Shown: positions 1 through 64,000 of the stretch, in pieces
Numbering within the stretch: the stretch's first letter is position 1
Layout: every line of letters begins with the position of its first letter
From: Penicillus capitatus
Taxonomy: Eukaryota > Plantae > Chlorophyta
DNA: 64,000 bases
Reading direction: 5' to 3'
Assembly: GCA_965649825.1 (NCBI GenBank)
Contig: OZ287700.1
Span: forward strand, 1,426,001-1,490,000
Position numbers and translations under genes: made by a program
Notes under the pieces: generated by a model
The model's input: only the letters and a program-made list of their open reading frames with translations
Told to the model about the DNA's origin: nothing
Databases searched by the model: none

Positions 1-420
1 CACGATGTGCCGAATTCGGTCGTTTGGGACTTCTTGGCCTAAACTCTACTCGTATTAATGAGTTGCTGTCTAGACGAAGTACTGCTGGTTCGCCAGCCCC
101 GAACGGTCTTTGATTTCAGTATCTGACACAGAACACCAAACGAATCGTGTTGAAAAGGACATACTCCTGGAAGGTCCACCAAGAGGTATGATGTTGGGTT
201 TTGTCACGTGCCTTTCAGATCGGGAGAGGCCGTCAAGGAGGAACGCTTAAGTACTGCGGAATGCATTTCTGACGGGTTAAATCAAACACACCGTATGACA
301 GGCAACACTCCGTCGATGGCTCTAGAGGTTTTAATGGACACGATGATTTGCGTTTGTCACAATCTATCGCGTGTTCTTTTACGCCGCGTTTTCACCTGCT
401 CTCCTCGTTCGATGACGACA

Positions 421-3400
421 ATGGGTCATTACGCCATTTCGATCGCTCAACCACTTTCCTCGATGCCGTGTGCGTTGCTCCTCTTGTTTCTCGCGAGCCT
501 TGTGAAATGCGACAACTCCACTTTTCGTTTCGGGGCTGTACTCAGCACAGAGGGCGATACGGCTGCGATGATAGAGGCTAAATTCGGATACGAACTTTTC
601 TTTGATACTCTAAACGCTCGCTCTGACGGTCGAGGCTTTTACCTGAGCGGCAAAAACGCGGTTGATGGATTCTACTTCAAATTCGACTTCCTCTGGCGCG
701 AAGACTCCAGCGACGCAGACATCCATGAGAGAGAAGTGAAAAGACTGATAGAAGAAGACAAAATCCATTTCTTGGGCGGCTCTCATCCAACATATGCAGA
801 AAAAGAAATGAGTATGGCGAATGATAGCGGCATCCTTAACTATCATTGTTGTGTCGGACCTGATGCGCTTTACGAGCGAGATCGACGTACCGTGTTTGGC
901 GTCCAGGCATCCAATAAGGAATATACCAAAACGATCATCCGAACGTTGGCTTTGGCAGAAGTGGGTGCTCTTGCGTTCGTATATGGAGAAGATAATGCAT
1001 TCACGCGGACAACGTGTGAAGCTGGCATCAAGTTTGCTGGCGAAATGGGGGCAGTGCATGTGGAGAACTCCACACATTTCATTCGCACATTCAACCAATC
1101 CGTGCCCGACTCAGATTTCTTAGACGATGTGGTGAGGGGAGTGAAGGAACAAGCCATTACAGCTGTGATCGCATGTGTCTTTCCGGATGCAGGGAAGCTC
1201 CTCGTTGATGCATTTCACGATAATGAGTACCCACTAAAGGCGTTTTTTCTCACAACGGGGCCCACAAGACAAAAGTGGGTAGATGGATTTGATCCCAAGT
1301 ACCGAGCACATGATCTCCTGAGTGCTGCCCAGTGGCATCATGATATGAAGTACACCGATAGCTTCTTCGGATCGGCTCTGGGATACACCGAATTGTACCA
1401 GGACAAATTCGACAATCATTTGCCAGCCTATACGTCCGCAGGCGCCTCAGCTGTTGGGTTGACACTTGTGGAAGCCATGAAGCACGCCTTTATGTCTTGT
1501 GACATATTGGCCACGGAAGGAAATGTGGAGAAGCTTCTCTACGATGCTGACGCTGTCGTGTGCGATGACGAGAAAGCGATACGCGGCTATGATCGTATAC
1601 TGGAAGCTCTGGCTGATTTAGACATGGACACGTTCTTCGGTGGAGTGAAGTTTAACTTCTACCGAAGGAACGTAGGGATGGATCCAGTGACAACCCAAGT
1701 CTTCAAGCGAACGTCGCAAGCTGGAAAAGAATACGCAGAAATCGAAGCTGTTCTGCCTTTGGGATACGCGACGGAGTTGATGAACTATCCCGCAGAGAAC
1801 CATTACAAAGAAGTCTGTGGGCCTGGTTACTACGTTGGAAGCGATTCCTTCTCACCATGTGTGATGTGTGAACCAGGAGAAATCTCCGATCAAAATAACG
1901 CCAAACATTGCGACAGCTGTCCAGTGGGTTATTGGACAAATAAACCTGGTCAGCACAAGTGTGAACTGTGTCCAGAAGGAACACATACAGAGATTCGAGG
2001 CGCCACAAAAATAACCGATTGCATTTGCAAGGAAGGATACTTTAATGCGGCCATGGAAAGTGGAGTCCCTTGCCAGCCATGTCCTGAAGGAGCGACGTGT
2101 GAAGGGGGGACAGAACCGCCAATTCCTGAAAAAGGTTATTGGGCGGTCGAGACAGGACGCACAGCAGTGTATCCTTGTGATCCCCCCACGAACTGCCTCG
2201 GCGGTGAAGATCTTCGCTGTGAAGAGGGGTACACCGGCAGGTGCGTGACATCTCTGTGACATCGACGCTCTTAATCTTTCCCGCAGGTTGTGTTCCGTTT
2301 GCGATGAAGGTTACTTCAGTGTGCTTCAAGAATGCCATCCATGCCGAAGCACGGCGCAGCTTGTGATCTTCTATCTCATGCTGTTGATTGGATGGTATGT
2401 CATTAACGTCATCGTGTCGAGGAATGTCGCTTCACTTGAAATGATCCTGGGATGGGCACAGCTTGCCAACATCATTGGTGATGTCAATCTCAATTGGACG
2501 AAGATGGTGCAAGACATGTTTGGAGTTGCCAACCTTCTCGATTTTGATGTTGACATCTTGGAGCCAACATGCATTCGGACCTGGGGATTCAAACAGAACT
2601 TTGTCACGCAGTTATTCCTGCCTTTCATCATGACGTTCATGGGCTGCAACGGCTACTTAGGATCTGCCATTACCTACTTCCTGGTAAAGAACAAATGGCT
2701 GAAACTGGATGGCCGCAGAAGAGAGATTCTCGCAATGTTTGTGAACATCCCGGAAAACGCAGATCAGCTCCGAGAGAAGTGGGACTCCACCATCGCCACC
2801 TTCCTCGCCTCTGTCGACATCATGTACGTCACCATTGCGAAGTACTGCTTCGACGTCTTCAAGTGCGAAACGATTGCTGGTGTTTCTGTCTTGCGAGTGG
2901 ATGCCAGTGTCGAATGCAACGAAGATCACATATTCTTGACCGTCTTGGCATCGATTGGAATCATTTTCTACGTCGTTGGGTATCTGATATACGTCGTATG
3001 GAAGCTGTTTGATCTACGCAATCGCCGTGCTTTCTCCGTTCCCCGAAACTTACGCCGTTATGGCTTCATCTATCAGAAGTACGAGCTGGATTACTATTAT
3101 ACGCCTGCTATTATGCTTGTACGAAAACTGCTCTTTGTGTTTGTTCTGGTGTACGTGAACAACCCTGCCTTCCAAGTTGGAGCGATTGCTGTGATCATCA
3201 ATACCTCTCTCATGATTCACGTTTACACAGCACCGTATGTCGATACCTATCTCGATGTGCTGTTCAATTTCTTGTTGCTGGCTTTGATGTTTGAGGCGTT
3301 TGGAGGATTGATGTTCTACAGCGAAAATCTCCCCGATGCCAATCGCGAAATTCTCGAATGGATCGTGATGGTCACACTTTTCCTGCTTATTGCTGTCTTC

Positions 3401-4480
3401 CTTGTTATTTTCGTAATGGAGATCTTTACCAAGTATTACATTCATTTCCTCAAAAGGGAACATCGAAAATTCGCACGGGAAAGAATGGGATCATCATCCG
3501 GTCAGAATTTCTTCAAGAAATTCTCAAGAGACACCGCTATGGAGAAGGCAAGATCTTTGGCATCTATTGGATCTCATGAAGAAGACAAGGACATCAGCTT
3601 TGAGCTTCTGGATACCTTTAAACCGAGCTTCATCTACAAATGTCTGCGCAAGAAGCCAGAGTTCATCGAAGACTGGGACAAACTGACGAATATGCTCAAA
3701 GATTTCATGTCGGACCAATCCGAAACGTCTTATCTTTCTATGGATCCTATGGCCAAGTTCTGGAGGAAGCTTGTGGATCGGTTCCCTGAGCTGGTGGATT
3801 TTCTGGCAGTGGCAGATGATGAAACGAGAGAGAAATTCAACAATTTTGCAACCAATTTGTACAGAAACTTCTACTTGACGAACAAAGTCACTCCATTGCC
3901 GCTGATGGACATCCTCAATTGGAGAGATTACGCACCAATGGCACAGTGGTTGGCAATTGCTCCGGATGGAGATCGGAAGTTTTTCATCGATTTTCTATCG
4001 GAGATGTTTCGCACAGCTGGCAATGTAAACGCCGCTGATATCCTCGAGTCCAAATTTCTCCAAGGCGGTCCCGATCCTCATCTCAAACGCCATGCCAGTC
4101 GAGAAAAGGGACTCTCCAACAAGAAGAAGCGCATTCTAGAAAGCATCGCCTCGGATGTAAATCCCTTCCAGCACTCCGCCGCCGAAAGGAAACTTGAGAT
4201 GACAACGACAGCGTTGTTGGCAGCCAGCAAATTCCGTCGAAGCAAAAAAGATGATGATGGTCCTCCTTCTCAAAGTCCACCTGGACCCAGCACACGGACA
4301 TCCCCGGAAGCGGTCAGTGAAGATGGAGGAGAATCGGCCCGTTCCGATACAAGAAAACCGCGCGCGACCACATTGAATAATCAAACGAGTTTTCAGTCTG
4401 AGATCTCGATCGAAAGCAAAAGATCTGTGAGCTTTGCAGTGGCTGAGAGGGAAAGATCAGATTCCACGGACTCTGGCTAA
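421..4480 (+). CDS. Receptor-like membrane protein: signal peptide, Venus-flytrap (type I periplasmic-binding) domain, GCC2/GCC3-like Cys-rich repeats, about 9 TM helices, cytosolic tail; 2 exons
   Basis: ORFs 208..2259 and 2288..4480 are joined by GT-AG intron 2241..2286, giving GYTGRLCSVCDEGY. Signal-like segment CALLLLFLASLVKC follows ATG 421. FRFGAVLSTEG...HFLGGS resembles LivJ/GABA-B-type ligand-binding domains. CPVGYWTNKPGQHKCELCPEGT repeats; multiple hydrophobic segments. Confidence 0.8.
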
Positions 4481-28465: not shown

Positions 28466-29951
28466 TCAGACAGTGAGTTGCTGCTCGTTCTGGTGAAGGC
28501 GAGCGACGAAGTCCCGCGCCCACAGATCTGCGTCTATGATGTCTTGCAGGTTCGGCTTCAGCTTCAAGTCATTCTGGTGCTCTGCGCACGTCTGTTCGAT
28601 CAGACGCGTGATGTCCATGTATCCGATCTTCTCGTCCAGGAACAACTCCACCGCCTTCTCGTTCGCGGCACTGAAGACGCCCGTCATGGTTCCCCCCGCC
28701 CTCCCTGCTGCGTAGGCCAGGTTCAGGGCAGGGTACTTCTTTCGATCCGGTTCGCGGAATGTCAGGTCTCCCATCTTGATGAAGTCCAATCGAGGCCAGG
28801 TCTCCTCGGAGGTGAGGATCCTCCGCGGCCAGGACAGGGTGTACAGAATGGGCAACCGCATGTCCGGCCATCCAAGCTGGGCAATGACGGAGGAATCGGC
28901 CGTTTCCACCATGGAGTGGATGATGCTCTGGGGATGGATCACCACGTCGACGTGGTCGTAGTCTGCCCCGAAGAGGTAGTGCGCTTCGATGACTTCCAGA
29001 CCCTTGTTCATCAGCGTCGCCGAATCGACCGTGATCTTGCGTCCCATGCTCCAGTTGGGATGCTTCAGGGCGTCTGCCACCTTGGCGTCCCTCAACCTCT
29101 CGACGGGCCAGTCGCGAAACGCCCCGCCCGAGGCGGTCAGGATGATTCTCCGCATTCCTCCCTCGGGCAGACCTGTCACATCACTCTCGCACGTTGCACA
29201 GACGGACCGCTCGCGCGTGACCGCACCCTGGATGCACTGGAAGATGGCAGAGTGTTCCGAATCGGCTGGCAGGATCTTGACGCCGTACTTGTCGGCCAGC
29301 GGCAGGACGTACGGACCACCGGCGATCAGGGTCTCTTTGTTGGCCAGACAGATGTCCTTTCCCGCCTCGATGGCCGCCACCGTCGGTCCGAGTCCAGCAC
29401 ATCCAACGATGCCTGTCACCACGGCCTCAATGTCTGGATGTCGTGCAGCTTCGATCGCGCCCTCTGCTCCTCCCAGAATCTCCGGCTGCGCATCCACGTC
29501 CCGAATGAGCTCCTTCAGCTCGGGGATTCGACGAGCATCCTGCAGTCCCACGAGCTTCGGCTTGAACTGTCGAACCTGCTCGGCAAGCAACTCGACGTTC
29601 GAACCAGCACTGAGCGCGACGACGGTGAATTCCTCGGGATGCTCGGCGCAGATGTCGAGCGTCTGCGTGCCGATCGAACCCGTCGACCCGAGCAGAGCAA
29701 TCGGCTACGTCACGTCGCCACACCGTGAAACTCCACTGGAATTCCGGGGCATGCACCTTCGGATCTTCCGGTTTGGGCGTGTGTTCGGGCACGATGGCGC
29801 GCTTGGGCCAGGCAGCAGGGGGTTCATCCGCTGTCGACGTCGCTCGGAGAGCCGCACAGCGTCGAGTGCTGTTGGCGCGTGCGGAGAGACTCGTCCTGGT
29901 GGAGGACGTCCTCGCGAACGTCGTCTTCGAAGATGGACCACACGAAAGCAT
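28466..29951 (-). CDS. DXR: 1-deoxy-D-xylulose 5-phosphate reductoisomerase, plastid-targeted
   Basis: Transit peptide, green-lineage PPAAWPKRA motif, [51 protein letters not shown]; two introns including an in-frame 54-nt one. Confidence 0.97.
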
Positions 29952-29999: not shown

Positions 30000-30326
30000 G
30001 ATTGCTGGCCTTCGAATTTGACGACCGCTCAGAACTCCCGTTCTCTTTCGCGTTTTGTCCAGTAGAACAACGTCGTTCCGGTTGGATGCCTGGCGCTGTT
30101 CAGTTAAACTGGAGAAGGGGCCAGCCTCGAGCCGATTGGACTACCTCCTGTGCGTCATCCCCGGTATGGACGCTTCTTTTCTGACGGAAACGCACCAGTG
30201 CATAGTCACAGACGACGAGTCCTGCTATAAGAAGCTCTACAAGGACACCCCTGTCGTCGACAGTGTCTCTGTTGCATGTTCCCTGACGCGTGTGGCTTTC
30301 AGGTCGAAGCTGGACTTCTCCGTCGA

Positions 30327-30339
30327 CATCGAGGGGGCG
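30327..30339 (+). repeat. 5' target-site duplication CATCGAGGGGGCG
   Basis: Identical 13-mer at 35565..35577; single copy at the empty paralogous site 56422..56434. Confidence 0.95.
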
Positions 30340-30349
30340 GATCAACATA

Positions 30350-32071
30350 ATGCAATCATCTACGCCTCCCACTGGAGGCAGCGGGAGTTTTGCGGCGGCA
30401 GCGCAAAACGCGACCCCGACCGAAAACGCACAACAACCGGCACAAACGACGCGCTTTGGACGACCAACGACGGCCTCGGACTGGGCAGACCAAACGGACG
30501 CGGACGAAAAACTCGGCAGATCGGACAAGCGAGGGTTTTACAGAACGACGATGAGGCGCATACACGGATGTCTCTCGACCCTTGAGCAAGCCGGCGTCGA
30601 CCACCACGCCCTGAAAACGGCCCTCTACCTAATCGAAGCCATGGAGGGAGGCTACGGCATTGGCCAGAGCGACATGTCCCGCGAAGCGCAACAAACCGCA
30701 AGGCCAGCAACAGTCCAGGCGAACCCCCTCTATCAAACGACCATGCCCTCTCTCCTACAACAACAACGAGCGCCAACCGGAGCCGAGACGACCACCCAGC
30801 AAATGCAGCAGACAACCAGAACAGCGTCGTACGCAGAAGTGGCCAAATCCAATTACTTCCCGAGCAGCCCAACAGACCAAGTACCCTGGACAATGGTCGC
30901 AAGACAGCAAAGACCCAAGCCAGCATACGAAACACAAACCCCAGAGCAACAAGCAAGAAGAAGAATCATGAGCGAGATGTGGAAACGCAGCTCACCAGAG
31001 GACCAGAACATGGCCAGACAAGTCTTCATCTCGCCTGTCATCGAGGCGGCCTCGATCAAGCGTCCTACCTACAACATGATGAAGGACGCCCTAACGATTT
31101 GGGCCAAGAACCACGGCGGCCAGGTGCAATACCTTAGGGGGCTCACCTCCGGAGATATGCTACTCCAGCTAGACCAGAACGTGATGACCTATCTCAGGGA
31201 CAACTTTTTCCCTGAGATAGACCTTCACCTACTGGGCTGCTGGCAGCCCAAACCTAGCCATCAAGATACATCGATCCCCAGCGTTGTAGTCGAGGGAGTA
31301 GACCGCTTCCTGTCACACAGAGCGGTCGTGGAAAAACTAAAAGACCCGGAAAATGCGACATGGCTGGGAGTCCAGCCAGAAACATTACAAACGGCGACAC
31401 TCACTTTTGTGAGATTTCACAGAAAAGTGGATGGCAGTGCTCCCGAACCTACCTCCACCGGAAGATTGGTTGGCCCACCAGAAATCATCACCCGCATGGC
31501 CCAGAAGACCGGAATATACGTGGGCTACCCCTGCTATGTCAGAGAATTCGCCCAACAAGAGAAATGGAAGACGGGTAACCGAACCATGGAAGTCGACTCC
31601 ACGAATAGAGGAGCCAAAAGAAACACACAGGAACGAGAAAGGGAAGAGGCAGACGAAATGATCACTCCCAGCAGAGAAGCGGAGCAGCCTCCCGAACCAA
31701 GCACCTCGCGCCGTCGGACAGAGACCCCGCCGCCCATCGATCTGACAACCGAAGAGAACAATCCAACATCAGAAGCTCCCCCGGATAAAACAGCAGAGAC
31801 CCCAACTCAGACAGCGAACCCTCCTGACCGGTCGGCAACGCTCCCACCAACCTTCCAAGCAGAAGAAGAGAACCTCGACCAAATAGCCCGAGCAATCAAC
31901 GATAATCTCTCGGAACTGACGGCCCAGTTCGACCAAGGCGAGCCAAAAACACAGCGCCCAGAGGCGGACCAGCCCCCACCAGAAGGATCAAAACAGCAGA
32001 GCTTGGAACCAGAGAAACGAAGATTCAGCGAGCGCCTAAGAAGGAAGCGCCAAGAAAAAGAAAAACAATGA
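30350..32071 (+). CDS. LINE ORF1 (gag-like nucleic-acid chaperone; no CCHC knuckle visible)
   Basis: First ATG inside the element is at 30350. SYAEV motif, central PSVVVEGVD..VVEKL segment, long acidic/Pro-rich C-terminus; directly precedes ORF2. Confidence 0.8.
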   Translation: MQSSTPPTGGSGSFAAAAQNATPTENAQQPAQTTRFGRPTTASDWADQTDADEKLGRSDKRGFYRTTMRRIHGCLSTLEQAGVDHHALKTALYLIEAMEGGYGIGQSDMSREAQQTARPATVQANPLYQTTMPSLLQQQRAPTGAETTTQQMQQTTRTASYAEVAKSNYFPSSPTDQVPWTMVARQQRPKPAYETQTPEQQARRRIMSEMWKRSSPEDQNMARQVFISPVIEAASIKRPTYNMMKDALTIWAKNHGGQVQYLRGLTSGDMLLQLDQNVMTYLRDNFFPEIDLHLLGCWQPKPSHQDTSIPSVVVEGVDRFLSHRAVVEKLKDPENATWLGVQPETLQTATLTFVRFHRKVDGSAPEPTSTGRLVGPPEIITRMAQKTGIYVGYPCYVREFAQQEKWKTGNRTMEVDSTNRGAKRNTQEREREEADEMITPSREAEQPPEPSTSRRRTETPPPIDLTTEENNPTSEAPPDKTAETPTQTANPPDRSATLPPTFQAEEENLDQIARAINDNLSELTAQFDQGEPKTQRPEADQPPPEGSKQQSLEPEKRRFSERLRRKRQEKEKQ

Positions 32072-35000
32072 TGCCGCGGGCATCCCACCGCGATCACCCA
32101 TACGACTGCCAACCAAGGACAAACACACAAAAAAGCAAAAAGACAATTCGAATCAACCAAATCAACCTGGCCAAGTCCCCTCTGGCATGGGAAGATCTCA
32201 AGATCCAACTCGATCGAGACGAGATTGACGCAGTACTAATCAGTGAACCGCCAAAATGCCTCCAACTGGGACGCACAATCCCCTCGGAATACACATGGAC
32301 GTACCAACAGAACGAATGCACGTGCGGAGCAGGGATTTTGTACAGGAAAAACCTCCGAGTCACGAAGCCGATCGAAGACACCCCACGGATAAACACCATA
32401 GCGGTGAAGAGGGAGAACAATTCAGCTCTGTGGATCTCTTCCTTCTACCTTCAGCCGGAGACACTGGAAGGCCTACACGATGTACAAAAGGTCAGCACAG
32501 AAGTGATCAAGACCGACTCCCAGTGGATACTGGGAGGAGATGCGAATGCACACTCCAGCCAATGGAGTCAATCTGACAACAACGAGTGCGGAAACAGAAT
32601 GGAGGACTGGATACTCGAGAACAACCTCTTGGTGATCAACGACCCGGACAGTGAAGCAACGTTCTCACGAAAGTCCACTCAAGACCAATGGCTCGACATC
32701 ACCCTCTCGACGCAAGGAATCTCGAGGCAGATCACTGAGTGGCAAGTCAAGAAAGAAGCCATCCCCAACTCCGATCACACCCTCATCCACTGGGAGATCG
32801 ATGGCCAAGACGCAAAACTCACCGATCTCAAGCAGAGGAGTTGGGCAAAGACGAACTGGGAAGAATACCGTGATCTTGTACAAGCCTTCCTACCAACTCT
32901 GCCGCTCTCTATAGACTCGGTTGCCCGGCTCGAGGAACAGACGAACCTCCTGACCAAGGCTCTCAGCACCGCCATGAAACTTACCACAAAAATGGTGGAA
33001 CCAAAGAAAATCCCAAGGAACTGGTTCGATCAGGAAGCCCAGAAACTACATAATCGTCTCCGGGCAAGCAAAAAAGGAACCAGTGAACACAACGCCATTC
33101 GGTCTGAATGGAAGGAACTCGTCAGAAACAAGAAACTACTATCCTTCCAGAAGTTCACAGAAAGCACCGACGACCATAACTGTTGGGAGGCATTGCGAAG
33201 ACTCTCCGACCCCAAGAAGCTGAAACCGATCCACTCACTCACCGACCAGAACGGAAGAACAAACGACCCGAAACAAATGGCAGACCTCCTTGCGCAGAGA
33301 TATTTCCCAGAGCTCGAACCGGGAAGAAGAACGGACGAATTCAGACAACAATCAAGTAAAACAAGAGACAAATACTCCCCGACGGACGGCAAACCAAAGA
33401 GAAACACCTGGTCCCACAGAGAGATCTGGGAAGAACTCCAGAGAGGCCGAAGGAAAACAAGCCCTGGACCTGATGACATCCCTTATCAAGCCACCCGAGC
33501 ATGTGCTGACATCCTAACCCCTTGGCTAACCGCAATATACAACGCCATCATCGACACCGGTCACGTACCTCGACAATGGAAGGTTGGCAAGGTATGCAAC
33601 ATCCCTAAACCGGGTAAGAGCGGGGAAGAAGCCAAACATTACAGACCAATCACCCTACTCAATTGTGTCTCGAAGATCTTTGAAACCCTGGTGACCAAGA
33701 AAATCAGTACATGGGCAGAGGACAAAGGGGTCTTGCCAGACAGCCAATATGGCTTCAGGAAAAACCGCACCACAAGTATGCCGCTGGGCAACCTTACCTC
33801 GAAAATCTGGAACTCCCTCAACCGCCGTCAAAAACTGACCTCGGTCAGCGTCGACCTAGAAGGTGCATATGACCGAGTAGTGCCGTCGATCCTGATCGAA
33901 CGACTAGAAGAAGCAGGGCTCGACGAAGACATCGTCAGAGTCGTATGGAACCTGTTGACAGACAGGGAAGCTAACATCACCATAGAGGAAGAGAACTTCT
34001 CCTACCGACCAGAAAGAGGCCTCCCCCAAGGATCGCCCGTGAGTCCGATACTCTATATCTTATACTCTGCGAGCATTCCAAAATACATACCAAACAGCGT
34101 ACACATAAATATGTACGCTGACGACATCGTAATCTACAAAGAAATGACATCCGAGAAAGACGAGACACAACTACAAGAAGCCCTAGACGGACTCCTGAGA
34201 TGGTGTGACGACTCTGGAATGAAGATAAATCCCGATAAAACCCAAACCATAACCTTCCGAAGGAACAGAGACCAGACGCAGCCACATCTCCGACTTGGTC
34301 AACACTCCCTTCAACACACCGAGACAATGAAATACCTCGGCATCACCTTCGATGAGCGAATGTCCTTCGAACACCACTTGAAAGAGAAGACCAGGCAGGC
34401 CACCCAACGAATACATGGCATCAGAAGAATGGCACGAGCCCTATGGGGCGCCTCATCCCACATAACGCGAAGACTATACCAGATGTGCATACAACCACTG
34501 ATGTTGTATGGAAGCGAGATATGGATCACCCGACTAAACACGATTAGAGCGAGCAAGATGTTGGAAAGAATCGGAAGACTTGGTGCCCTTACCATTACGG
34601 GGCTCGATCAAACTACATCAGCGGAAACTGCAATGACACTCGCCTACCTCCAGCCCCTCAGCACCCTCGCTACCGCACAACTACTCAAGTCGGCCCCACA
34701 AACTTACAAAGACCCTAAGAACCTAATACGGCCTCTATCACCGCCGACCCACTGCACCCCAGAAGCAACGCTCCGCTCAGAACTGGAGAGAGTATGGCAG
34801 CACCACCACCAAGAGAAGAACAGAAGACAACGCCCGACAGAGGACGAACTGCATCAAATGCTCAAAAACAGGGATCTATTTGAGCAATGGTATACAGAAT
34901 ACCTAGAAGAGCAAACAAACAGACAATGGATACTGTCAAACAAGAGCCAAAGTCTCAAAAACATAGGATGGCGAAGGATAAACAAAGAAAAGCCCTGGTT

Positions 35001-35352
35001 CGACCACCCGCTGTGGACTAAAAGAAAGACAACTCAAATCAACAGAATGCTCTCAGGACACATCCCGACCCTCACCTACCTGCAATCCCGAGGACGAGAA
35101 GTAGACGATGTCCACTGCCGCCTCTGCAGAGAAGCTCCAGAAACCAGAGACCACCTCCTTCGGTGCCCGGCTCTCAGAAAAACAAGAAGGATGTTATTCA
35201 TGGAAGAAGAGCTCACGATCGAAAAATTCGGACCGCTCCTCCAAGAAGCAAAACTCTTCTACTCATTCGACCAATACTGTTCCCACTGCCACCAATACAT
35301 ATTGCAAGAAACAGGGGGTAAGAACAAAACCCCAAACACCAAACACCAATAA
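32068..35352 (+). CDS. LINE ORF2: apurinic-like endonuclease, reverse transcriptase, C-terminal CCHC finger; no RNase H
   Basis: QINL, ISEP, GGDANAH..W, DITL and SDH (APE); YRPITLLNCVSKIFE, QYGFR, DLEGAYD, PQGSPVSP, YADD and KYLGITFD (RT); CRLCREAPETRDHLLRCP. Confidence 0.97.
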   Translation: MMPRASHRDHPYDCQPRTNTQKSKKTIRINQINLAKSPLAWEDLKIQLDRDEIDAVLISEPPKCLQLGRTIPSEYTWTYQQNECTCGAGILYRKNLRVTKPIEDTPRINTIAVKRENNSALWISSFYLQPETLEGLHDVQKVSTEVIKTDSQWILGGDANAHSSQWSQSDNNECGNRMEDWILENNLLVINDPDSEATFSRKSTQDQWLDITLSTQGISRQITEWQVKKEAIPNSDHTLIHWEIDGQDAKLTDLKQRSWAKTNWEEYRDLVQAFLPTLPLSIDSVARLEEQTNLLTKALSTAMKLTTKMVEPKKIPRNWFDQEAQKLHNRLRASKKGTSEHNAIRSEWKELVRNKKLLSFQKFTESTDDHNCWEALRRLSDPKKLKPIHSLTDQNGRTNDPKQMADLLAQRYFPELEPGRRTDEFRQQSSKTRDKYSPTDGKPKRNTWSHREIWEELQRGRRKTSPGPDDIPYQATRACADILTPWLTAIYNAIIDTGHVPRQWKVGKVCNIPKPGKSGEEAKHYRPITLLNCVSKIFETLVTKKISTWAEDKGVLPDSQYGFRKNRTTSMPLGNLTSKIWNSLNRRQKLTSVSVDLEGAYDRVVPSILIERLEEAGLDEDIVRVVWNLLTDREANITIEEENFSYRPERGLPQGSPVSPILYILYSASIPKYIPNSVHINMYADDIVIYKEMTSEKDETQLQEALDGLLRWCDDSGMKINPDKTQTITFRRNRDQTQPHLRLGQHSLQHTETMKYLGITFDERMSFEHHLKEKTRQATQRIHGIRRMARALWGASSHITRRLYQMCIQPLMLYGSEIWITRLNTIRASKMLERIGRLGALTITGLDQTTSAETAMTLAYLQPLSTLATAQLLKSAPQTYKDPKNLIRPLSPPTHCTPEATLRSELERVWQHHHQEKNRRQRPTEDELHQMLKNRDLFEQWYTEYLEEQTNRQWILSNKSQSLKNIGWRRINKEKPWFDHPLWTKRKTTQINRMLSGHIPTLTYLQSRGREVDDVHCRLCREAPETRDHLLRCPALRKTRRMLFMEEELTIEKFGPLLQEAKLFYSFDQYCSHCHQYILQETGGKNKTPNTKHQ

Positions 35353-54345: not shown

Positions 54346-57300
54346 ATGGGTACGACGTCGTTTCGGCGAAGTGCCCATCGCAATTGTGTTCTCCGTAGAC
54401 GCTCGTTTTGACAGATGGATGTGCGACCGATACCGCACGACGCTTCAGCAGGTGGATCCTGTCGGATACCCTCCAACGGATCACCTGTACGTCAATCTGG
54501 ACGACGTTCTTGCCAGGTCCGTCTCCGCGGCAAGCGCCCTCGATACATTCCCGTCCCGCAGCTACGTCAATTGGACGGAGGCGGCGTTGAAGCAGTCGGA
54601 AGACGCATTGCTCCTCTCCGTTTCGAAGCACATCGAGTTTCTCGTCGAAACGATCAGGCCGCAGTCGCAGCTATTTATCGCTGTCAGCGGTATGTCCATC
54701 AACGGCACCGACTGTCCCATCACCGCAAGATCTTGCGCGATGTGACGAGCAGGCGTGTTGCCTGTTGCTTTCCTGAATACCCAGCGAAGGCAGTGCATCT
54801 ACAACAAGGGAAAGGCAAGGTCTTGCGATTGCGATGACGGCAGCCTGAGAGTGTGCGGTGTCAGATCATGGACGATGCGTTTCGCCAGTCGGTGCACGCG
54901 GAGAGCACGGAGGATCTGTTCAACATGAATGCTTTGATGCCGGGGACGCCGTTCATGGAGAGACTGGACGCCCACCTGCTGTTCTTGATCCGACACAACA
55001 TGGCATACGTCTTCGAGTGGCAGGAACTGAAGGTCATCTACTCAGGTTCGTCTGTCGCGTGGGAGACGGCGACCGCAAAGAGTGAGACTGACTCAGGGTC
55101 TTCGATCGCGGGGGACGCTTCGTTCAAGATCTTCGAAGAGATGCGCTGCGCGCGCCAGGAAAAAGGAGCGACAGATGTGCTCACGCACGGGGTGTACACA
55201 ACGCAGCACGACGCTCCCTTGCACGCGTTGGCCACGAGGGAGCCGTACATCTACCTCGTCAAGGAGAAACGCTGTCTGCAGCCGTCGTACCTTCTCTGAT
55301 GCACCCTTTCGATTCTGTGCGGTAATCTCGTAGAGAGCGAGATGCGCAGACCACTCGGGACGAGCTCAAGGAGGAAGACTTCGTCATCCAGTACATGAAG
55401 TGCGCGTCTCCGAAGAGGCCGTTCACCGATCCGGCCATTGCTGTGCTACTAGTCTGTTCAGGGAGTGCTGGGAACAGGAGCTCCAGCATCTGAACGCAGA
55501 GGTGGATGCGGAACGCAGTCTGGACGATTTCCTGCTCTTCTGCACGTTCCTTGGAAACAGGGCCATTCCCCGTATCCCTCTCCGATCCACCGTCTCGCTC
55601 TCACCGCGATGGTGTCGCAGGCATTCCGACGCTGCATCTGCTGGAGGGGAGTCTGGATGAGCTGCTGGACTGTTACAAGGAGTTTCTGCGTCCCACGCTC
55701 TGCTCGCAGGGCTACAGCGGAACGGAATGCGGGCAGTCGGCCGTGCCCTATCTCACGAACGCAGACCGAGCGATCAATCTGATCAACTTCGAGGCATTCA
55801 TCCACCTCATCGGCGCAGAGAACAGGGAACTCGACCGTCTTCGGTTCCGGGAGAAGCTGCAGGTGTCCGGAAAAGCCCCCAGGAATCTCACTCTCATTCT
55901 CCCCGGCGCCGCCGGCTTGATCTACTACCACGACGGTCCGTACGAGTGGTGGAAGAACTGGTACTACACGATGAAGCTCAAGATCGAGGAGCAACACAAA
56001 GAGGCGATAAAGGAGGCGGCGTCCTACTTCTCGAGTGCCCTGATCTGGTACTACGAATACCTGACGAAGCAGACTGTGGATTGGGATTGCGCGTACCACG
56101 AGCTCTATGCACCCACGCTGTCTGACCTGGCATCCATCTCGGAGCACGAAGGTCGAGTCCTCTCTTGCTTCTCTTGTCGACGACGCGATCGCTGTCCAGT
56201 TAAACTGGAGAAGGAGCCGGCCATGAGCCGATTGGAGTATCTCCTGTGCGTCCTCCCCGGCGTGGACGCTTCTTTTCTGCCCGAAACGCACCAGTGCATA
56301 GTCACAGACGACGAGTCCTGCTATAGGAAGCTCTACAAGGACACCCTGTCGTCGATACTGTCTCTGTTGCATGTTCCCTGACGCGTGTGGCTTCCAGGTC
56401 GAAGCTGGACTTCTCCGTCGACATCGAGGGGGCGTGGAACGACCAGGAGAACAAGCTCCTGATCCGTCCTTTCAACTACTATCGGATCACGAAGACGATC
56501 GGCAGGTTCAAGGGCGTGCAGAAAGAGATCTGGCCGGATCAGACCCTACTCGACGACGGCTTCCAGCACATCTTCGTCCCGAATCACCGTCGCGCTCCGC
56601 AGCAGCCATTCTCGTGTGAAACGTGCGATTTCGTGCAGAGAGCAAAGCGAAGAGCTACTGCACGTCGACGATCAACAACTACCAGGATGTGAAGTGCTCC
56701 TGCGGATCGACAGTCCTGTGGTCACGGCCTGTTCGCGAAAGGACATCTCCCTGGCAGAAAGGTTCCGCACTGTCAAGCACCATGTCGTGAACTTCGACCA
56801 TCGATTGCATCAGGTCCTTCGCTGCCGTTCCCGCCCAGTTTCCCGACACTCGATACCGTCCTGCAAGTCAGATGGCAGTACCAACGGCGCGCGACTCAGT
56901 GTTCTGTGCAGTTGAAGTGCTGCATGATGCAAATGAAGTGTGACCGCTACGCTCGACAGAGTGAGCGCGAGAGTCTTGTCATCGAAGTGTCCGGAGACAG
57001 CTACAACTGGCCTGGGGGTGCCAAGAAGGTCGATTCTGCGACCAACCGACGGATGAGCAGTTCCCATGTTTCCTGCGACAGGTGTTTGACAGTCTCAAGG
57101 AGCAGGTGGTGTACATCGGCTACCCCTGCAAGACACGTGCCACCGTCATCGGAACCACCGATCCATGGGCGACGTACTACGTCCCTGGCAAGTCCCAGAG
57201 ATCTCTGTACGGCGGAAACCACACGCGGGAGCATCAGATTCTCTCCACACAGATGAAGCAGGACCTCTGGGTCGAAAGCGCGATCAACCCTGGTCGATGC

Positions 57301-58789
57301 GGCATCCTTCTGCACGTCATCGTTCAAGGAGACCTGAAGGAACGCGAGGTGCACTATCCTCTCCAGGTTCGTCTGGAACGCCTTCGCTCGTTCGATGGTC
57401 GTGGAGATTGCTGCGCAGCTGACGTTGATTTCGTCCGACGGGGGATTTCTCTCCGCCTACCAGTGCTACTTTCCGCCCGAACAGATCGACACGATCTCCG
57501 TCGCCCAGACCTACACACGTTTTCGCTTTGGTCCCTTGGCATTGCAGTAATGTCTGTGCGGGTGTAGGAAACGAGAGCGTGCAGAATGAGATCCAGCCGT
57601 CTGTTCTGGGTCCCGTGGTTTCGGAAATGATGCTCTCGCCTGCTGACTCGGAAACTGTCAATGCCGCCTCGGCCTTAGATTCGAGTTACTCGACGTATAT
57701 GGAGCATCAGATCTACGACGACGAACCGGGTCAGGAAGGAGATCTGGCAGCGACGCCTGCTGAACCAGTGCCCTTGGCACCGGCCGCTGCCTCCGAATTG
57801 CCGCCAAGCACGGCTGTTAACAATGAGGAACAGAAGCGGGACGAGCTTGCAGAAGACGAGGCCATACAGCGCGCATACGAAGAAGAGATCCGACTGGAGC
57901 TGAACAACTTCTCGGAGCGCACCGCCTTAGGTCTCCCTCGAAGAATGTCGGTCGAAAGAAACATCCCGTTTGTGTCTCTCTAGAGCCCTGGCAGCCGAGC
58001 GGTCTTTCAGATGCCTTCGTTCCGGCAGCAGCTGTCGTTCCGGCTCCCTTGGAGCCAGAGACCGAAGAAAAGGTAGAGGAGGAGGAGGAGAAGGCAGAAG
58101 ATGAAGTCGAAGAAGAGAAGACAGAAGAGCCAGAAGCGTCTCGAGCGGAGATCCCAGACGACACACAAGATTTCCTTCAGGCTGTGGACGTCGTCCGCGA
58201 GTTGGACATCTCTGAGGATGCATTCGTGAAGATCTTGGGCCATTGTTCGTTGAAGACCCTATCAGGTCAGCATCGGCTCTCCTTCCTGCAATCAACCATC
58301 TTCCGTCCAGGCGATTCAGTGGAGATCGGTCTGGGACTAGAGACTGGAGGGTTTCCGGTACTCTGGATCGCTCCGGAACTGAAGACGGTTCTGGAGAACT
58401 ATGCATCGGAGCATCCGTGGGTCTTCTGCATGTTGGATGATCCTTCACTTCCAGATGGCCGCTACGCCATTGATGGCGTCACAAACAACTCTAAGCTGGA
58501 AGCACGATACCTACGAGCTGTTCAACAGTTTCTCCAGAGCATCGATCCGACGCATCTTCGAACGGTAAATGGCTTGATCTCACTGTGGCTTTCAAGGTGT
58601 ACTGCCTCCCAGGTTGAACGATCTAACGAATTGGCGGATAACAAGCCGGAGCAGACAATTCAGGAAAGTGTGAAAGATCAGGCGCCCAGCGAGGCCCAGC
58701 CTGCGCAAATGAAGGTCATTCATTCCATTAGTTTCCTGTTCTGTTGTTCAAGGAAGGTGTGTCTGCAGTTTGCTCCTTTCGACGATTAG
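54346..58789 (+). CDS. XRN1: XRN1-like 5'-3' exoribonuclease homolog lacking catalytic residues (pseudonuclease); multi-exon; 3' end approximate
   Basis: A 4-nt first exon (ATGG, intron 54350..54398) gives MDARFDRW. Aligned blocks: NALMPGTPFMERL, YAPTLSDL, EYLLCVLP, VYIGYP and the XRN1 C-terminal EIGLGL...LENY...PWVF region. Confidence 0.85.
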
Positions 58790-60000
58790 GAATAACGAAT
58801 GTGGCGATATCATTATCGCTACGATTGCTGTTGTTATGCATCTTACCTTTTGCAGTGGATGTGCGTTCTTGTGTGGTTTGGTCTCGAATGTTGTGAAGGA
58901 ATGGATGAACGCTCGTTGATACAGTTGGATCGTCTTGTGTGGTTTCAACTGGACCGTTTGAAAAGAATTTGCGAATCTTTCGCTGAACAGTCAACCGACG
59001 TCATCCGGGTATCCGAGCGAAGCACTCATGCAGGTGCTGAAGTTGGGAGAGTTGAAGTTGGACGTTAAATACTCTGCCACGTCGTAATTCGTTCTCCTTT
59101 CGTGGCGCCGGGCGAACCCGAACCGGGAATCTTCGCAGATCGCGGCAAACTGATTCCGTGCCCCTTCCGGCGGGGTCTGGTAACGTCCGGAGGAGCTAAG
59201 ATCTGTGTTTCAAGACGGATCCCCTTTCGTCGCGGGAGGTCGCAACACGTGCCCCTGCAAAAGAACACAAACAGATGCTCAACTAACGAAATTGCACACA
59301 GCCAAGCATCTGCCTCCGAACTTTACAAGCTGCTCGTTTCTCTTGTCGAAGAGTTCGAGGTCCAGATTGGACACTCCACCGACGCTCGACCATTTCTTCA
59401 ACTTCTTCTCAGCTGCATCGCGTTAGATAAGCCTCCGGCGTCTGCTCAATCGCTTCCACTGTCACAAACCAGTCACAGCGTTTTAGGAGCCTGCTTGCTG
59501 CTATCTTCGAAGACATGTTAACGGCTGAAGACCAGTAGAACTCGATTCCCCAATTCGAGTCGAAGTGCCTGTGTCGATGGAATCCAAGCTGGTTTCCTAA
59601 TCGGAACGAAGCCTCCCAAAGAACCCACAATTGCTGTTTGCTTGCTCACTCTGAAAGAGTCTGCAGAGAATTGGACGCCGGATAAATCCGAGAAGATTGC
59701 TCCCATACGGACGACGCCTCGCTGCATTCGTAATCAGTCACTTGTTGAAGAACAGACGCGAAAAAAAGGATAGCCCAGAAACCTGACAAACATTTCAGTT
59801 TCATGCATCACCTCGTCAGGTTCGCGCCCTAACGCTGACTGTCCATGTCTGTTTTGTGAAACCATCGTGAAGCCGATGACGAGGACGTTCTCTTCGACGG
59901 GCGTCCTGATATTGAACTTCACGGTGATGTTGATTGCTTCCAGCTAAGCGCATTCGTTGTGCGCGTTCAAGGCGCGTATTTAAACGCACTACCAACAAGA
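58728..60000 (-). CDS. Possible multi-exon gene of unknown function
   Basis: Short coding-looking segments bounded by splice-like sites (e.g. DAAEKKLKKWSSVGGVSNLDLELFDKRNEQL|gtaaag; WEAINITVKFNIRTP). No model could be completed. Confidence 0.2.
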
Positions 60001-60062
60001 GAGAAGCGTCATCAACAACACTTTCTGTGTCGGTGCGCATGTTTCTATCGGCATCGTTTCCA

Positions 60063-61573
60063 ATGAACAATACATTGTCTTCCCAGAGCGTCGCTGTGGC
60101 ACTAAGGAATTTCATAATCCTGATTGTATTCCTTATCCGCCCTGCTGTCTCTCAGAACGAATGCCTCTGTTCAACGACTGGTCGGAGCAACGGTGTCGAA
60201 GTCGATAAGCCGGGATGCATGTTACAGTCCGAGTCTGCAACGGAGCCAACCTGCTATGCCCAGAATTCAACCAACTGCAAAGAACACATGGAATCCATTG
60301 AGTATCCTGGTGCTGCTCTCATTCCGTGTTCCGTCGAAGACGCCTTGTACACGGCGGCTGAATTGAATGATGTCGATTCGATTGTCCGATTTCGCGAGCT
60401 CGGAGTTTCACTTGATACTAAGAGAAACGTTTCTTACGGCCCTTTCGGATATGAAGTCTTCTCGGTTATCGAGTATGCCGTTGTCTGGGGCAGCTTTGAT
60501 GTCATCGAAGATATGATTGTCAATGATGATTACAATTGCAACGACCACGTTTCTCTTTTCAACAGACTTTGTCGTCTGTCGAATGAGAAACACTGTCATG
60601 AAGACGACGAAAGAAGGAAAGCAATGCAGGGTTTCCTCAATATGTTTGCCGGACTAAGTTGTGATGGTGGGGTAAGCGATTCGCATACAAGGAACAGAAT
60701 CGATTACTCTGCTGCAGGCCATTGCTGACATTTTTGTGGAACCAGCACCGGGCGGGAAGCTAATGGAAATACTGGCAATGGCTGAATCTGTAGGTGTAGA
60801 TGCTCCCTGCACTGAATACACCTATTTTGCTTCATTGCGCACATCACAAGATAACGGGTATCATCACATTTGCGGCGGCGTGCTCGTTTCGAAGAACGCG
60901 GTACTTACTGCTGCACATTGTGTGGATGGAACCGGAGGTTTGAACGTCCGACTTCTTGTGCTGAATGCACGCTCCAGTGCAGGCAACGGGGGTTCATGTA
61001 CTCCGGATTTCGAAGTGCGCCTTTCTTTCTAACGACAATCAAAGTGAATCCGTTGTTCTGCAGAGCCGAAGCGTGGCATCAATCGAGATCCATCCAGATT
61101 GGTATAAGGGAAAAAATCCCCAGGCCCTAGGCAATGGATATGATTTAGCCCTGATCAAGCTGAATAAACCATCTGGTAAGAAGCCGGTCAAGCTTCAGAA
61201 AAAGAACGCCAGAACGGGGAATACCTTGAATTTCGTCGGACTCGGAAGGCAAAGCTCTCGTGGCGGTTTTTCGTCTACCTTGCAAGTGGGCAGCGTGTCT
61301 GTTCTCGACAAGGACAACTGCGAAGAAGCGTACAACACAGTCTTCCCAAAGAGTGTCCTCTGCAGTGACAGTGCATCAGAGTTCTGTGACGGAGATCAAG
61401 GAGGACCGTTGATTGATACGACATCGAAGAAAGACAAACTGGTGGCCATTGCACATTTGAGAGATCCATCAGATGACTGCGGCACGTCGGACTTCCCTGG
61501 ATTATACGCCGACATAAGGCAGTCGGGGAGCTGGATTAAGAAGACGTTGAAGAAGTTCTCCAAAAAATCTTGA
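60063..61573 (+). CDS. Secreted fusion protein: signal peptide, Cys-rich module, degenerate ankyrin-like segment, trypsin-fold domain with catalytic Ser replaced by Gln
   Basis: Introns 60672..60717 and 61015..61063 join ORFs 59934, 60736 and 60965 in frame. ICGGVLVSKNAVLTAAHC, YDLALIKL and DGDQGGPL. Confidence 0.8.
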
Positions 61574-63318
61574 AGATCAGCGCTTTCGTTTGCACCTTTG
61601 AATCAAGCCATACTGTAAAGTCCTCTTTTAGCTTTTATCATGTCTGCCTGTCTGACTGCCTTTATGAAATTCTGAACACGCGCAAACTACATTTCTGAGT
61701 GTCACTGTACCAGTTTCACTTCCATTAATCTTTCATCATTGTGAGTGAACGTTCTCGTTCGTGCGCTATTGGATGAAGCCTTTGGTGTGTCTCCTCTGCT
61801 TGAGGCAGAACAGATAGTCCTCGTCGGACGTTTCTAACACCTCCAAGAAAGACTCCGCTTGACACGATCCCTAACATTCGGATGCAGAGCTCAGGTGTAG
61901 CTGAGTGTTGCAGTCGTCGAGAGTGGCCTGCGAGTCAACATGCCTTCGTTCGACCTTGCTGGCCCCATTAGATTGCCATGGTGCGGAAATCGACGACGCG
62001 ATCATCCACGTCGAGACGTGTGCATAACGGCCACCTGCGGACGCGCATGGCATTGAAAACTGGGCAAGTTCTGAGCCTATATAAACAGAACGTCTGTTAG
62101 ATGAGGACCAAGGAACACCTTATCGGTTGTGGTGTTTCATCGACGGCGTCGTTCGGCGACAAACCAAATTACTGAACTAACTTCAAAGGAGCACGAAGAA
62201 GACAAGTGTTTGACTGCAGAGTAGTGACCTACCGCACTCCTATCCCTTGCGCAGAGAATCGCTGGATCGTCTTTTAGGGATGTTTTGATCTTTGGCCGTG
62301 AAGGAGAATAGCAATGCGGGTTGATAAAACACTTACAGAAGGAAGCATTGACCGATTTCGTGACGGAGGTTGAACCCAATGGTTTCACAGTGTCGAGTCA
62401 GCAGAATAAGCGTCGGAGACATTTTCCAGTCAGTGAGATCGATCTCTTTTCTGTCGCCGATCACACACACATTCTGATTCGGAGAATGAACAATATTGTA
62501 CAGGTATGATTCAACGGGACAACGAATTCTGGATTTGCATCCTACTCGGAACTAAACAGCTTAGGGACCCTCTGTCGTTCGGATGGCTCGATAGAGATGG
62601 CACAGCAGCGTTGGCAGCTTCACCAAAACAGTTGATTGACGCTCATCATATGATAAAGCGTTTGTGTCAGTGATTTGTAAGTGCACTTGGGATTCGATCC
62701 GTCGTTTCGGCAACGAACTTACTCTGTTCTTTCATCACTTTCACGAGGCTCCCTAGATAATCGGTCCAGCGTTGCAAGAAGATTCTAGATTTGGCCATTC
62801 GCTGAAATCTCGCCAGTTTTTCGCACGGGCTGCTTTTGTCGATGCTCTTGTTCTCTTTATGTCCGTTTCTTCGCAAGGACGTTTATTTTCTCTCACTCCA
62901 GTAAAACAGAGGATATTTAGAAAACGATCAAACCCCCTTCTGTGGGCTGCTGCTGAGGTGAGGAAAGCCTCCTGGTTTGTGACCGAGGCTGCGAAGGAGA
63001 TGAATGGATGTCAACCACGGAATACTCTGTTTGATGTGGGGTTTAGCGAGTAGCCTTTGATCAGCACATGGTGGAAACAGCGCTATCCTTCTTCGCGTCT
63101 ATCATCGCAAGACGTCTGTTGGTTAAGAGAGACAGGGATATCCATCAGATTCGTTATTCTGTTGCAGATAGACGCACAAGCGATATCAGCAAAAATCGGA
63201 GATCTCTCTAATAATTGAAAGGGTCTTTTGCAGCTGATAGATTCCATGCGCAAATTCCGAGCCATCATTTGCAGTCCTTTTCGTTTGTAGCCCTCGGTGT
63301 CGTCGACCCGTTTCAAAA

Positions 63319-63644
63319 ATGGCAGACAAAACTCTTGTTCTTCTACTGATCTTCTGTGTTGGCTTCATGCTCTCTGTGCCACATACGGAAGGGCGAAACA
63401 TGCAACCAGGCGATTTTTCCGACTTCGGTCTACAGGCCGCGGTTGCCGAATCAAATGCCGGACCTCCCCTCCCGGCAACGGAGACGGTGGTGACGAAACC
63501 GCTACCGAAACCTTCGTGTACGCCTTCGGTAAGACGCAAACGCCGCGTGATCGGCGTGAGTCATCTTGTTCGATTCAGGGATTCGAGTGCTCTTCGTCGG
63601 TGGAATGTTGCAGCAATGAGTGTGTCTATTATATCTGTAGCTGA
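63319..63644 (+). CDS. Secreted 91-aa precursor ending in an inhibitor-cystine-knot-like peptide; join(63319..63528,63579..63644)
   Basis: Signal MADKTLVLLLIFCVGFMLSVPHTEG; phase-0 intron GTAAG...TTCAG (50 nt); spliced C-terminus CTPSGFECSSSVECCSNECVYYICS-stop. Confidence 0.8.
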
Positions 63645-64000
63645 GTTCGAAGGCACTCATGTCTTTCGCCGTTGTCGACTTGAACCCTTTTTGCACAAAG
63701 TCTACCGACGCTCTCTGTTAAACGCGTGGATGATGCTCGGCGTTAGATAGAGCGAATGCAATACGTCGTCTTCAAGCGGATCATCGAAAGGCTCTTCGTG
63801 GCCACGCGCCGTTCATCGTGAGCAGACCCTCGATCATTGTCCGACGAAAAAATCGTCTCCAGAGCGTCCTGGTATCGAAGTGTCACGACGAGATTCTGCG
63901 ATCTGCGGCCTCTGTCCTCCCCGGATGAGTCATGCCGTTGCATACACAGAGCGTTGGTTGGCAGTTTTGTCATGATCGATGGAAAACGATGTTCGTCAGA

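Follow-up and report, generated by a model that had tools for sequence, protein, structure and literature searches.

Knottins of arthropod venoms, e.g., aptotoxin VII (1wqb) and omega-atracotoxin-Hv1 (1axh), carry their six cysteines in the order C-C-CC-C-C and have a C-terminal beta-hairpin and a precursor with a signal-pro-mature layout. The loop-length consensus of the inhibitor cystine knot includes 6, 5, 0, 3, and 4 residues. The O-superfamily conotoxins are characterized by framework VI/VII, and the conotoxin-like (ctl) peptides of baculoviruses have the same nominal cysteine framework. Land-plant knottin-type peptides, e.g., bleogen pB1 (5xbd), are secreted six-cysteine peptides with a CC doublet, and most of them are cationic. 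A report about stand-alone knottins in algae was not found in the literature searched.

The locus described here is situated in a 64-kb stretch of DNA, which as a whole is called the window in the following. Its spliced product is a precursor of 91 amino acids, the last 25 residues of which have the pattern C-x6-C-x5-CC-x3-C-x4-C-S-stop. We think it rather probable that the locus represents a functional nuclear gene that is restricted to the lineage of its host, an alga with plastids and probably a green one, and that has a secreted knottin-like product. The algal peptide shares the order of the cysteines, the predicted C-terminal beta-hairpin, and the signal-pro-mature layout with the arthropod-venom knottins. 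However, it lacks significant sequence similarity to them, it is acidic and not basic, its precursor is devoid of a dibasic pro-peptide site, its Cys1 is encoded on a separate exon, and its host is not venomous. The O-superfamily conotoxins have the same cysteine framework, nearly the same loops according to the framework description, and a similar precursor length, but their signal and pro regions are unrelated to those of the algal precursor and their gene structure is different. Compared to conotoxin-type precursors in general, the algal precursor is acidic, has no basic processing site, and has Cys1 on a different exon from the other cysteines. The land-plant knottin-type peptides resemble the algal peptide in being secreted, in their six cysteines, and in the CC doublet, and, provided that the host alga is a green one, they would belong to the same kingdom-level lineage. 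In contrast to them, the algal peptide has shorter loops after the CC doublet and before the last cysteine, and its 25-residue domain is not cationic.

The gene is composed of two exons that are separated by a short intron (Table 1). The preliminary description had proposed that two open reading frames (ORFs) in unrelated frames are joined by a 50-nt intron. Re-deriving the frame arithmetic gave an exact agreement of frames and junction, and the same gene model is kept in a sister genome. The two listed ORFs, a 143-aa ORF with an ATG start (63319-63750) and a 115-aa ORF with a GTG start, are indeed in different frames. The frame of exon 2 is free of stop codons from 63297 to 63644 (+), i.e., over 115 codons (119 in the sister genome), and spans exon 1. 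It does not contain an ATG in either species, and therefore it can be reached only by splicing. Over the stretch of exon 1 this frame has the substitution pattern of non-coding DNA, with a ratio of synonymous to non-synonymous changes of 6:24. A Cys codon within the intron (63567-63569) also generates a C-x6-C spacing in the unspliced sequence, but only in the window, because the sister genome does not have that cysteine; this second C-x6-C is probably a coincidence. The 91-aa precursor is built from three parts, MADKTLVLLLIFCVGFMLSVPHTEG, RNMQPGDFSDFGLQAAVAESNAGPPLPATETVVTKPLPKPS, and CTPSGFECSSSVECCSNECVYYICS, and has the C-terminus ...PSCTPSGFECSSSVECCSNECVYYICS. When the window was shuffled 100 times and translated in all six frames, the strict six-cysteine pattern was never found, and the five-cysteine pattern encoded by exon 2 was found with a mean of 0.01 per shuffle.

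Table 1. Features of the peptide gene, its flanks, and the introns used for comparison (positions in the window).
Feature	Position	Strand	Remarks
5' flank (promoter/5'UTR)	63194-63318	+	78.5% identical to sister, with 1-nt indel
Exon 1	63319-63528	+	210 nt, starts with ATG, ends in phase 0
Predicted signal peptide MADKTLVLLLIFCVGFMLSVPHTEG	63319-63393	+	exon 1 codons 1-25
Acidic, then Pro-rich region	63394-63516	+	exon 1 codons 26-66; omega 0.35
Cys1 and T-P-S (end of exon 1)	63517-63528	+	Cys1 at 63517-63519; CTPS invariant in 4/4 copies
Intron	63529-63578	+	50 nt, GT-AG, GTAAGA...TTCAG
Exon 2	63579-63644	+	66 nt including TGA; encodes GFECSSSVECCSNECVYYICS (Cys2 to Cys6)
3' flank / probable 3'UTR	63645-64000	+	partly conserved; cut by the window end
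Benchmark intron, family-C-GPCR-like/TRP gene	2241-2286	+	46 nt, GTGCGT...CGCAG
Benchmark intron, DXP reductoisomerase (DXR)	29173-29226	-	54 nt, junction located with a DXR homologue by tblastn
Benchmark intron, trypsin-like protease	61015-61063	+	49 nt, GTGCGC...CTGCAG, internal CTAAC

When 5.8 billion proteins were searched by means of a word index, only the read-through ORF of the window itself and one cluster (P0002) were retrieved; the cluster has three near-identical members, all of which are contained in the ENA assembly ERZ26696514. Two of these sister copies are located on a 1.68-Mb contig (ctg303812), at 458.6 kb (L002) and 478.3 kb (L001). The distance between them is 19.7 kb, and they are part of a tandem duplication of recent origin that has about the same size. 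The third copy is found at 215.8 kb of a 704-kb contig (ctg303731; L003/L004). As the three copies are near-identical, they represent one independent comparison, and the counts given below are small. The ATG, the donor GT (GTAAAA in the sister), the acceptor AG (TTCAG), the intron length of 50 nt, all six cysteines, and the position of the stop codon are kept in the sister genome. The stop codon itself is TGA in the window and TAA in the sister, and two Cys codons have been exchanged synonymously between TGC and TGT. The identity to the sister is 82% in exon 1, 70% in the intron, and 86% in exon 2; indels are present in both flanks but not in the coding sequence. The idea that the locus is unusually conserved or has been recently transferred was rejected, because the values of 70-86% at the peptide locus are ordinary in comparison with the 82-84% of the DXR intron and its flanks. 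The impression of an unusual conservation had come from a blastn comparison against the duplicated copy L001.

The distribution of the substitutions is frame-specific in both exons. In exon 1 the ratio of synonymous to non-synonymous changes is 11:18 in the frame of the ATG, compared to 3:27 and 6:24 in the two other frames. In exon 2 the spliced frame has a ratio of 5:3 and the read-through frame one of 0:8 (Fisher p = 0.026). The two exons thus have different coding frames, and therefore a number of nucleotides that equals 2 mod 3 must be removed between them. Omega values according to Nei-Gojobori are 0.29 for the coding sequence, 0.55 for the signal peptide, 0.35 for the middle region, and only 0.09 for the Cys domain (codons 67-91), while dS, at 0.43, is close to the intron divergence of 0.38. 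At the level of the two genomes compared, gene structure, conservation, selection, and cysteine spacing are established.

Two alternative explanations can be judged by these numbers. If the intron were retained, the product would be the 143-aa read-through ORF, which does exist and has been called by a prokaryote-style gene caller in both genomes (P0001, P0002). However, beyond 63528 the read-through frame has accumulated no synonymous but eight non-synonymous changes in the exon 2 stretch, 13 of the 15 changes in the intron stretch affect codon positions 1 or 2 of that frame (5/8/2 at positions 1/2/3), and the C-termini are unequal, with total lengths of 143 and 125 aa. Intron retention is therefore very unlikely, and both public gene calls are wrong, as they represent the unspliced read-through ORF. 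Still less credence can be given to the view that the locus is a chance combination of ORFs or a decaying pseudogene without any product. The small size of the gene and the confinement of its homologues to a single sister lineage would fit, but purifying selection is frame-specific, the Cys codons have changed exclusively synonymously, the position of the stop is preserved, indels do not occur, and the pattern was never seen in shuffled sequences.

The credibility of the intron was evaluated with three introns of the window that had been verified by homology (Table 1), because joining ORFs by brute force was too noisy for this purpose. The intron in the GPCR-like gene has a 45-nt counterpart at the same place in the sister genome, which cannot be aligned while the exons are conserved, and which starts with GTAAGA, the donor hexamer of the peptide-gene intron. 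The DXR intron is 55 nt long in the sister, about 82% identical, and contains indels; an additional sister intron has a length of 56 nt. Splicing of the trypsin-like gene yields one continuous match to Pfam Trypsin (HMM positions 6-220) with 110.9 bits, compared to 68.6 bits when the 3' ORF is taken by itself. The verified introns of the window are thus 46, 49, and 54 nt long and those of the sister 45, 55, and 56 nt, so that an intron of 50 nt is typical for this genome. The peptide-gene intron has further characteristics of a spliceosomal intron, i.e., GT-AG ends and a lower identity than the exons (70% versus 82-86%), and a conserved GTGATCG inside it is a possible branch site. It is thus presumably spliced out in vivo. 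The spliced form was not found in database searches of 5.8 and 1.84 billion proteins, which covered run assemblies.

All GT-AG pairs that restore the frame were enumerated. Among the conserved alternatives, just two retain Cys2 to Cys6 together with almost the entire exon 1. Both are introns of 32 nt, which are too short and would add residues that are not conserved. One of them (63547-63578, donor GTGATC) deserves mention, because it would place VRRKRR in front of GFEC and would thereby create, in the window, the "missing" site for cleavage at basic residues, a polybasic site from which a 21-residue peptide with five cysteines would be released. Its GT and AG are conserved in both genomes and its frame works. 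Nevertheless, this is a highly improbable gene model: at 32 nt it is much shorter than any verified intron (45-56 nt), the inserted residues differ between the two genomes (VRRKRR versus VKRENH), and the released peptide would have an odd number of cysteines.

The N-terminus of the precursor had been described as a signal peptide, and this view has gained support. It contains a hydrophobic core of 16 residues with a Kyte-Doolittle peak of 3.1, which is conserved in the sister, and AlphaFold predicts a helix for residues 3-19 with a pLDDT of about 85. According to the -3/-1 rule, cleavage would occur after TEG, and the remainder of the precursor would be secreted. Bipartite plastid targeting by a signal peptide plus spacer was considered and rejected, because the transit peptide of DXR is a plain one and the spacer has an acidic character.

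The middle region, which the preliminary description had regarded as a Pro/Thr-rich spacer, is indeed rich in proline, but it is more than a spacer, because it harbors a motif of 16 invariant residues, DFGLQAAVAESNAGPP (63421-63468, +). The motif has three synonymous and no non-synonymous changes, and it is a constrained element, possibly with a role in sorting or folding, or possibly a second active part. The Pro-rich linker that follows the motif varies between the species. The middle region as a whole is predicted to be disordered (AlphaFold pLDDT 50-55). A dibasic site ahead of Cys1 had been reported to be lacking, and this is borne out by the sequence.

The motif and the Cys domain are both under strong constraint and are joined by a variable linker. 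This would also be expected if the product were not a defense molecule but a secreted signalling peptide, e.g., a mating, density, or developmental cue, in which both conserved elements are read by receptors of the alga itself. The occurrence of a single copy in the window, the restriction to one lineage, and the non-cationic nature of the peptide are in accordance with such a function. However, a gene for a receptor or another partner is not linked to the locus, and we regard a signalling function as rather improbable.

The spacing of the cysteines, C-x6-C-x5-CC-x3-C-x4-C in the window and in the sister, fits the consensus of the inhibitor cystine knot, as had been noted before. AlphaFold predicts a beta-hairpin for the last 33 residues (pLDDT 77), and the two strands are at positions 79-81 and 84-86 (pLDDT 67-86). 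In a Foldseek search of the PDB, the sole match of both models was aptotoxin VII (1wqb), with TM values of 0.56-0.57 and an rmsd of 1.3-1.5 A over 23 columns; the E-values of 6-8 are not significant for so small a domain. The product is probably shaped like a knottin. In solved knottins, which are compact, the hairpin bears Cys V and VI, and a knot would require the disulfides I-IV, II-V, and III-VI, the last of which passes through the ring.

The resemblance does not extend to a family assignment. The cysteine framework had been likened to that of conotoxins, spider toxins, and baculovirus peptides, but a relationship to these families is not supported, and all Pfam scores are below the curated cut-offs. 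For the Conotoxin family (PF02950) the scores are 11.8 bits for the window and 18.4 bits for the sister, compared to a gathering threshold of 25.1, and only HMM positions 41-74, at the mature-peptide end of the model, were matched. Omega-atracotoxin (PF06357; 12.1 versus 22 bits) and the I2 conotoxins (PF17557; 12.0 versus 27 bits) were missed as well. As to the baculovirus ctl peptides, the algal peptide had no Foldseek match in BFVD, and a relative was not found in IMG/VR. A phmmer search of the PDB retrieved mostly knottins with non-significant E-values of at least 0.06; the best of the weak matches in the PDB and in Pfam were to arthropod-venom knottins, and a profile search of the PDB with the two-species alignment did not bring an improvement. 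The peptide therefore has no demonstrable membership in any named toxin or antimicrobial family, as every curated threshold tested was missed.

It has to be considered that the disulfide-rich end might not be a true knot, but a knob with a structural or carbohydrate-binding function, carried by a Pro-rich stalk that is glycosylated at hydroxyprolines and anchored in the wall or matrix. Such a protein would resemble a miniature algal hydroxyproline-rich glycoprotein, or its Cys domain would resemble a six-cysteine hevein-like or other carbohydrate-binding module. The Pro-rich PPLPATETVVTKPLPKPS directly before Cys1, which is not followed by a processing site, is in line with this architecture, and so are the acidic nature of the domain, its CCS motif, its YY aromatic pair, and the presence of the cactus six-cysteine peptide pB1 (5xbd, E = 0.28) among the weak PDB matches. 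However, the loop after the CC doublet comprises three residues, which is too short for a hevein-type sugar-binding loop. In addition, an hmmscan of Pfam did not reveal any plant family or carbohydrate-binding family even at E <= 10, and the linker is short and varies between the species. Therefore, both the stalked knob and its likeness to these glycoproteins or modules appear unlikely to us.

Further relatives of the peptide are scarce. The JGI metagenomes, which were searched with a protein pattern and with a degenerate DNA pattern of exon 2, and IMG/VR did not contain any, and a third ortholog was not found beside the DXR gene of a more distant relative (L006). Judging from these results, the peptide family seems to be young or fast-evolving. 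Scanning the window and the sister loci with loose knottin patterns for paralogs revealed the peptide gene alone. In a full HMMER scan of 1.84 billion representatives, a single protein besides the ortholog (P0025) matched the Cys domain; three additional matches were rejected, because they were low-complexity artefacts of repetitive bacterial surface proteins. P0025 is an unannotated protein of 176 aa that is encoded on a 1.4-kb Tara Oceans scaffold with 32% GC (L005, 386-916, +). It is identical to the Cys domain at 13 of 27 positions, which include C-P-x4-C-x3-ECCSN-x-CV (library-wide E = 8e-5), and it passes the Pfam cut-offs for Conotoxin and UPF0506. It contains three tandem repeats of C-x6-C-x5-CC-x3-C-x9-C, and its last loop thus comprises nine residues compared to four in the algal peptide. 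Furthermore, P0025 is tandem, intronless, and basic, and it stems from a genome of very different composition, whereas the algal gene is split by an intron and its product is acidic. Because the overlap of 27 residues is short and dominated by cysteines, homology and convergence are inseparable in this comparison.

The window is eukaryotic and contains, in addition to the peptide gene, a family-C-GPCR-like gene, TRP, IQ/CH, ankyrin, TMEM120, and Rab3-GAP genes, a LINE-like element, and genes for DUF1350 and DXR. Matches were not obtained when the window was scanned with Rfam and for tRNAs. The preliminary description had taken the host to be an alga, and the neighboring genes speak for this assignment. 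DXR is of the plastid/cyanobacterial type, the sister DXR has a Ser/Thr/Arg-rich transit peptide without a signal peptide, and the best named relatives of both DXR and DUF1350 are from land plants and a trebouxiophyte, i.e., from Viridiplantae. We therefore take the host to be an alga with a primary plastid, which is probably a green one.

The neighborhood of the gene differs between the two genomes. A stretch of about 24 kb (30060-54246) between DXR and the peptide gene is missing in the sister contig. Within it lies a LINE-like non-LTR retroelement (30290-35352, +), whose ORF2 comprises an endonuclease, a reverse transcriptase, and a zf-RVT domain, in a region with a strong AT skew. A second window-specific stretch (54871-62205) contains a gene for a trypsin-like serine protease (about 60760-61573, +). 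The possibility that the peptide is an inhibitor of the neighboring trypsin was considered and is unsupported, because the protease gene resides in this 7-kb stretch, which is absent from the sister locus. The gene with family-C-GPCR-like and TRP-like parts (208-4480, +) is 64% identical to its sister counterpart (L004, 1-3006, -), compared to 84% for DXR, and the two genomes differ, by a relocation and an inversion, in its position and orientation with respect to the peptide gene. The value of 64% reflects uneven divergence or a paralogous comparison.

The 5' flank is non-coding, because its 1-nt indel breaks any upstream frame. It contains a conserved TAATAATTG box at about 63209-63217, and the context of the start codon has A/G at -3 and G at +4. 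An additional ATG in weak context (63246-63248, +) is conserved about 73 nt upstream of the main ATG (about 9927 in L001). It is part of a highly conserved block (GATAGATTCCATGCGCAAA) and could represent a short uORF or a regulatory element, if it is transcribed; its presence counts against the favored reading of the locus. The identity of the 3' flank to the sister is 55-69% just past the stop codon, with indels, and it is higher from about 63745 onward. In the sister, the gene that follows downstream (L001 11562-12347, +; L004 11575-12342, +) codes for a protein of 255 aa with scattered cysteines. With its internal signal-peptide-like start (MKQTCVFLALLAAVFV...), this protein may be secreted as well. 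The equivalent position is beyond the end of the window.

Taken together, the favored reading of the locus as an algal gene for a secreted knottin-like peptide leads to the following model. A GT-AG intron with the typical length of 50 nt would be removed from the pre-mRNA, whereby the frame is shifted, and the resulting 91-aa precursor would enter the ER via its N-terminal signal peptide, which would then be removed. The remaining approximately 66 amino acids would consist of the conserved acidic motif, the Pro-rich linker, which is probably extended and possibly glycosylated, and the C-terminal domain of 25 residues. Most likely, the six cysteines are oxidized to three disulfides and a knottin-like fold is formed around the beta-hairpin, and the product of about 66 residues would then be exported.

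The surface properties give a hint to the possible function. The preliminary description had taken the peptide for a candidate in defense, against grazers, or against microbes, but a defense or toxin role is not supported. The 25-residue domain has a pI of 4.05 and a charge of -3.3 (-1.3 in the sister), and neither cationic antimicrobial peptides nor basic channel blockers typically have a net charge of -3. An acidic, Ser-rich surface with aromatic (Tyr) residues points to specific binding, e.g., of an enzyme, a receptor, or a polysaccharide, rather than to membrane lysis. A likely role of the peptide would be that of a very stable extracellular binding module, with a target that is a matter of speculation. 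An inhibitor or a ligand are candidates, which might act on another organism or on the surface or matrix of the alga itself.

The locus might represent the first stand-alone family of cystine-knot peptides that is native to a unicellular green alga, either as an early relative of the land-plant knottins or as an independently evolved acidic knottin directed against grazers, parasites, or competing microbes. This is at present a tentative proposal with a rather low probability. With either origin of the knottin, the conserved motif in the pro-region may serve to guide folding or sorting. Scaffolds of this class are common and have convergent origins, and therefore the finding is incremental unless a function is shown. 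The locus also exemplifies that small, intron-split genes for Cys-rich peptides escape prokaryote-style gene callers and most eukaryotic ones. If the peptide were an early relative of the land-plant knottins, the defense scaffold would be older than the land plants. And if it is indeed knotted and secreted, it would add an algal, acidic branch to a scaffold that is prized for its stability and for engineering, and it would offer a handle on the chemical interactions of the host alga.
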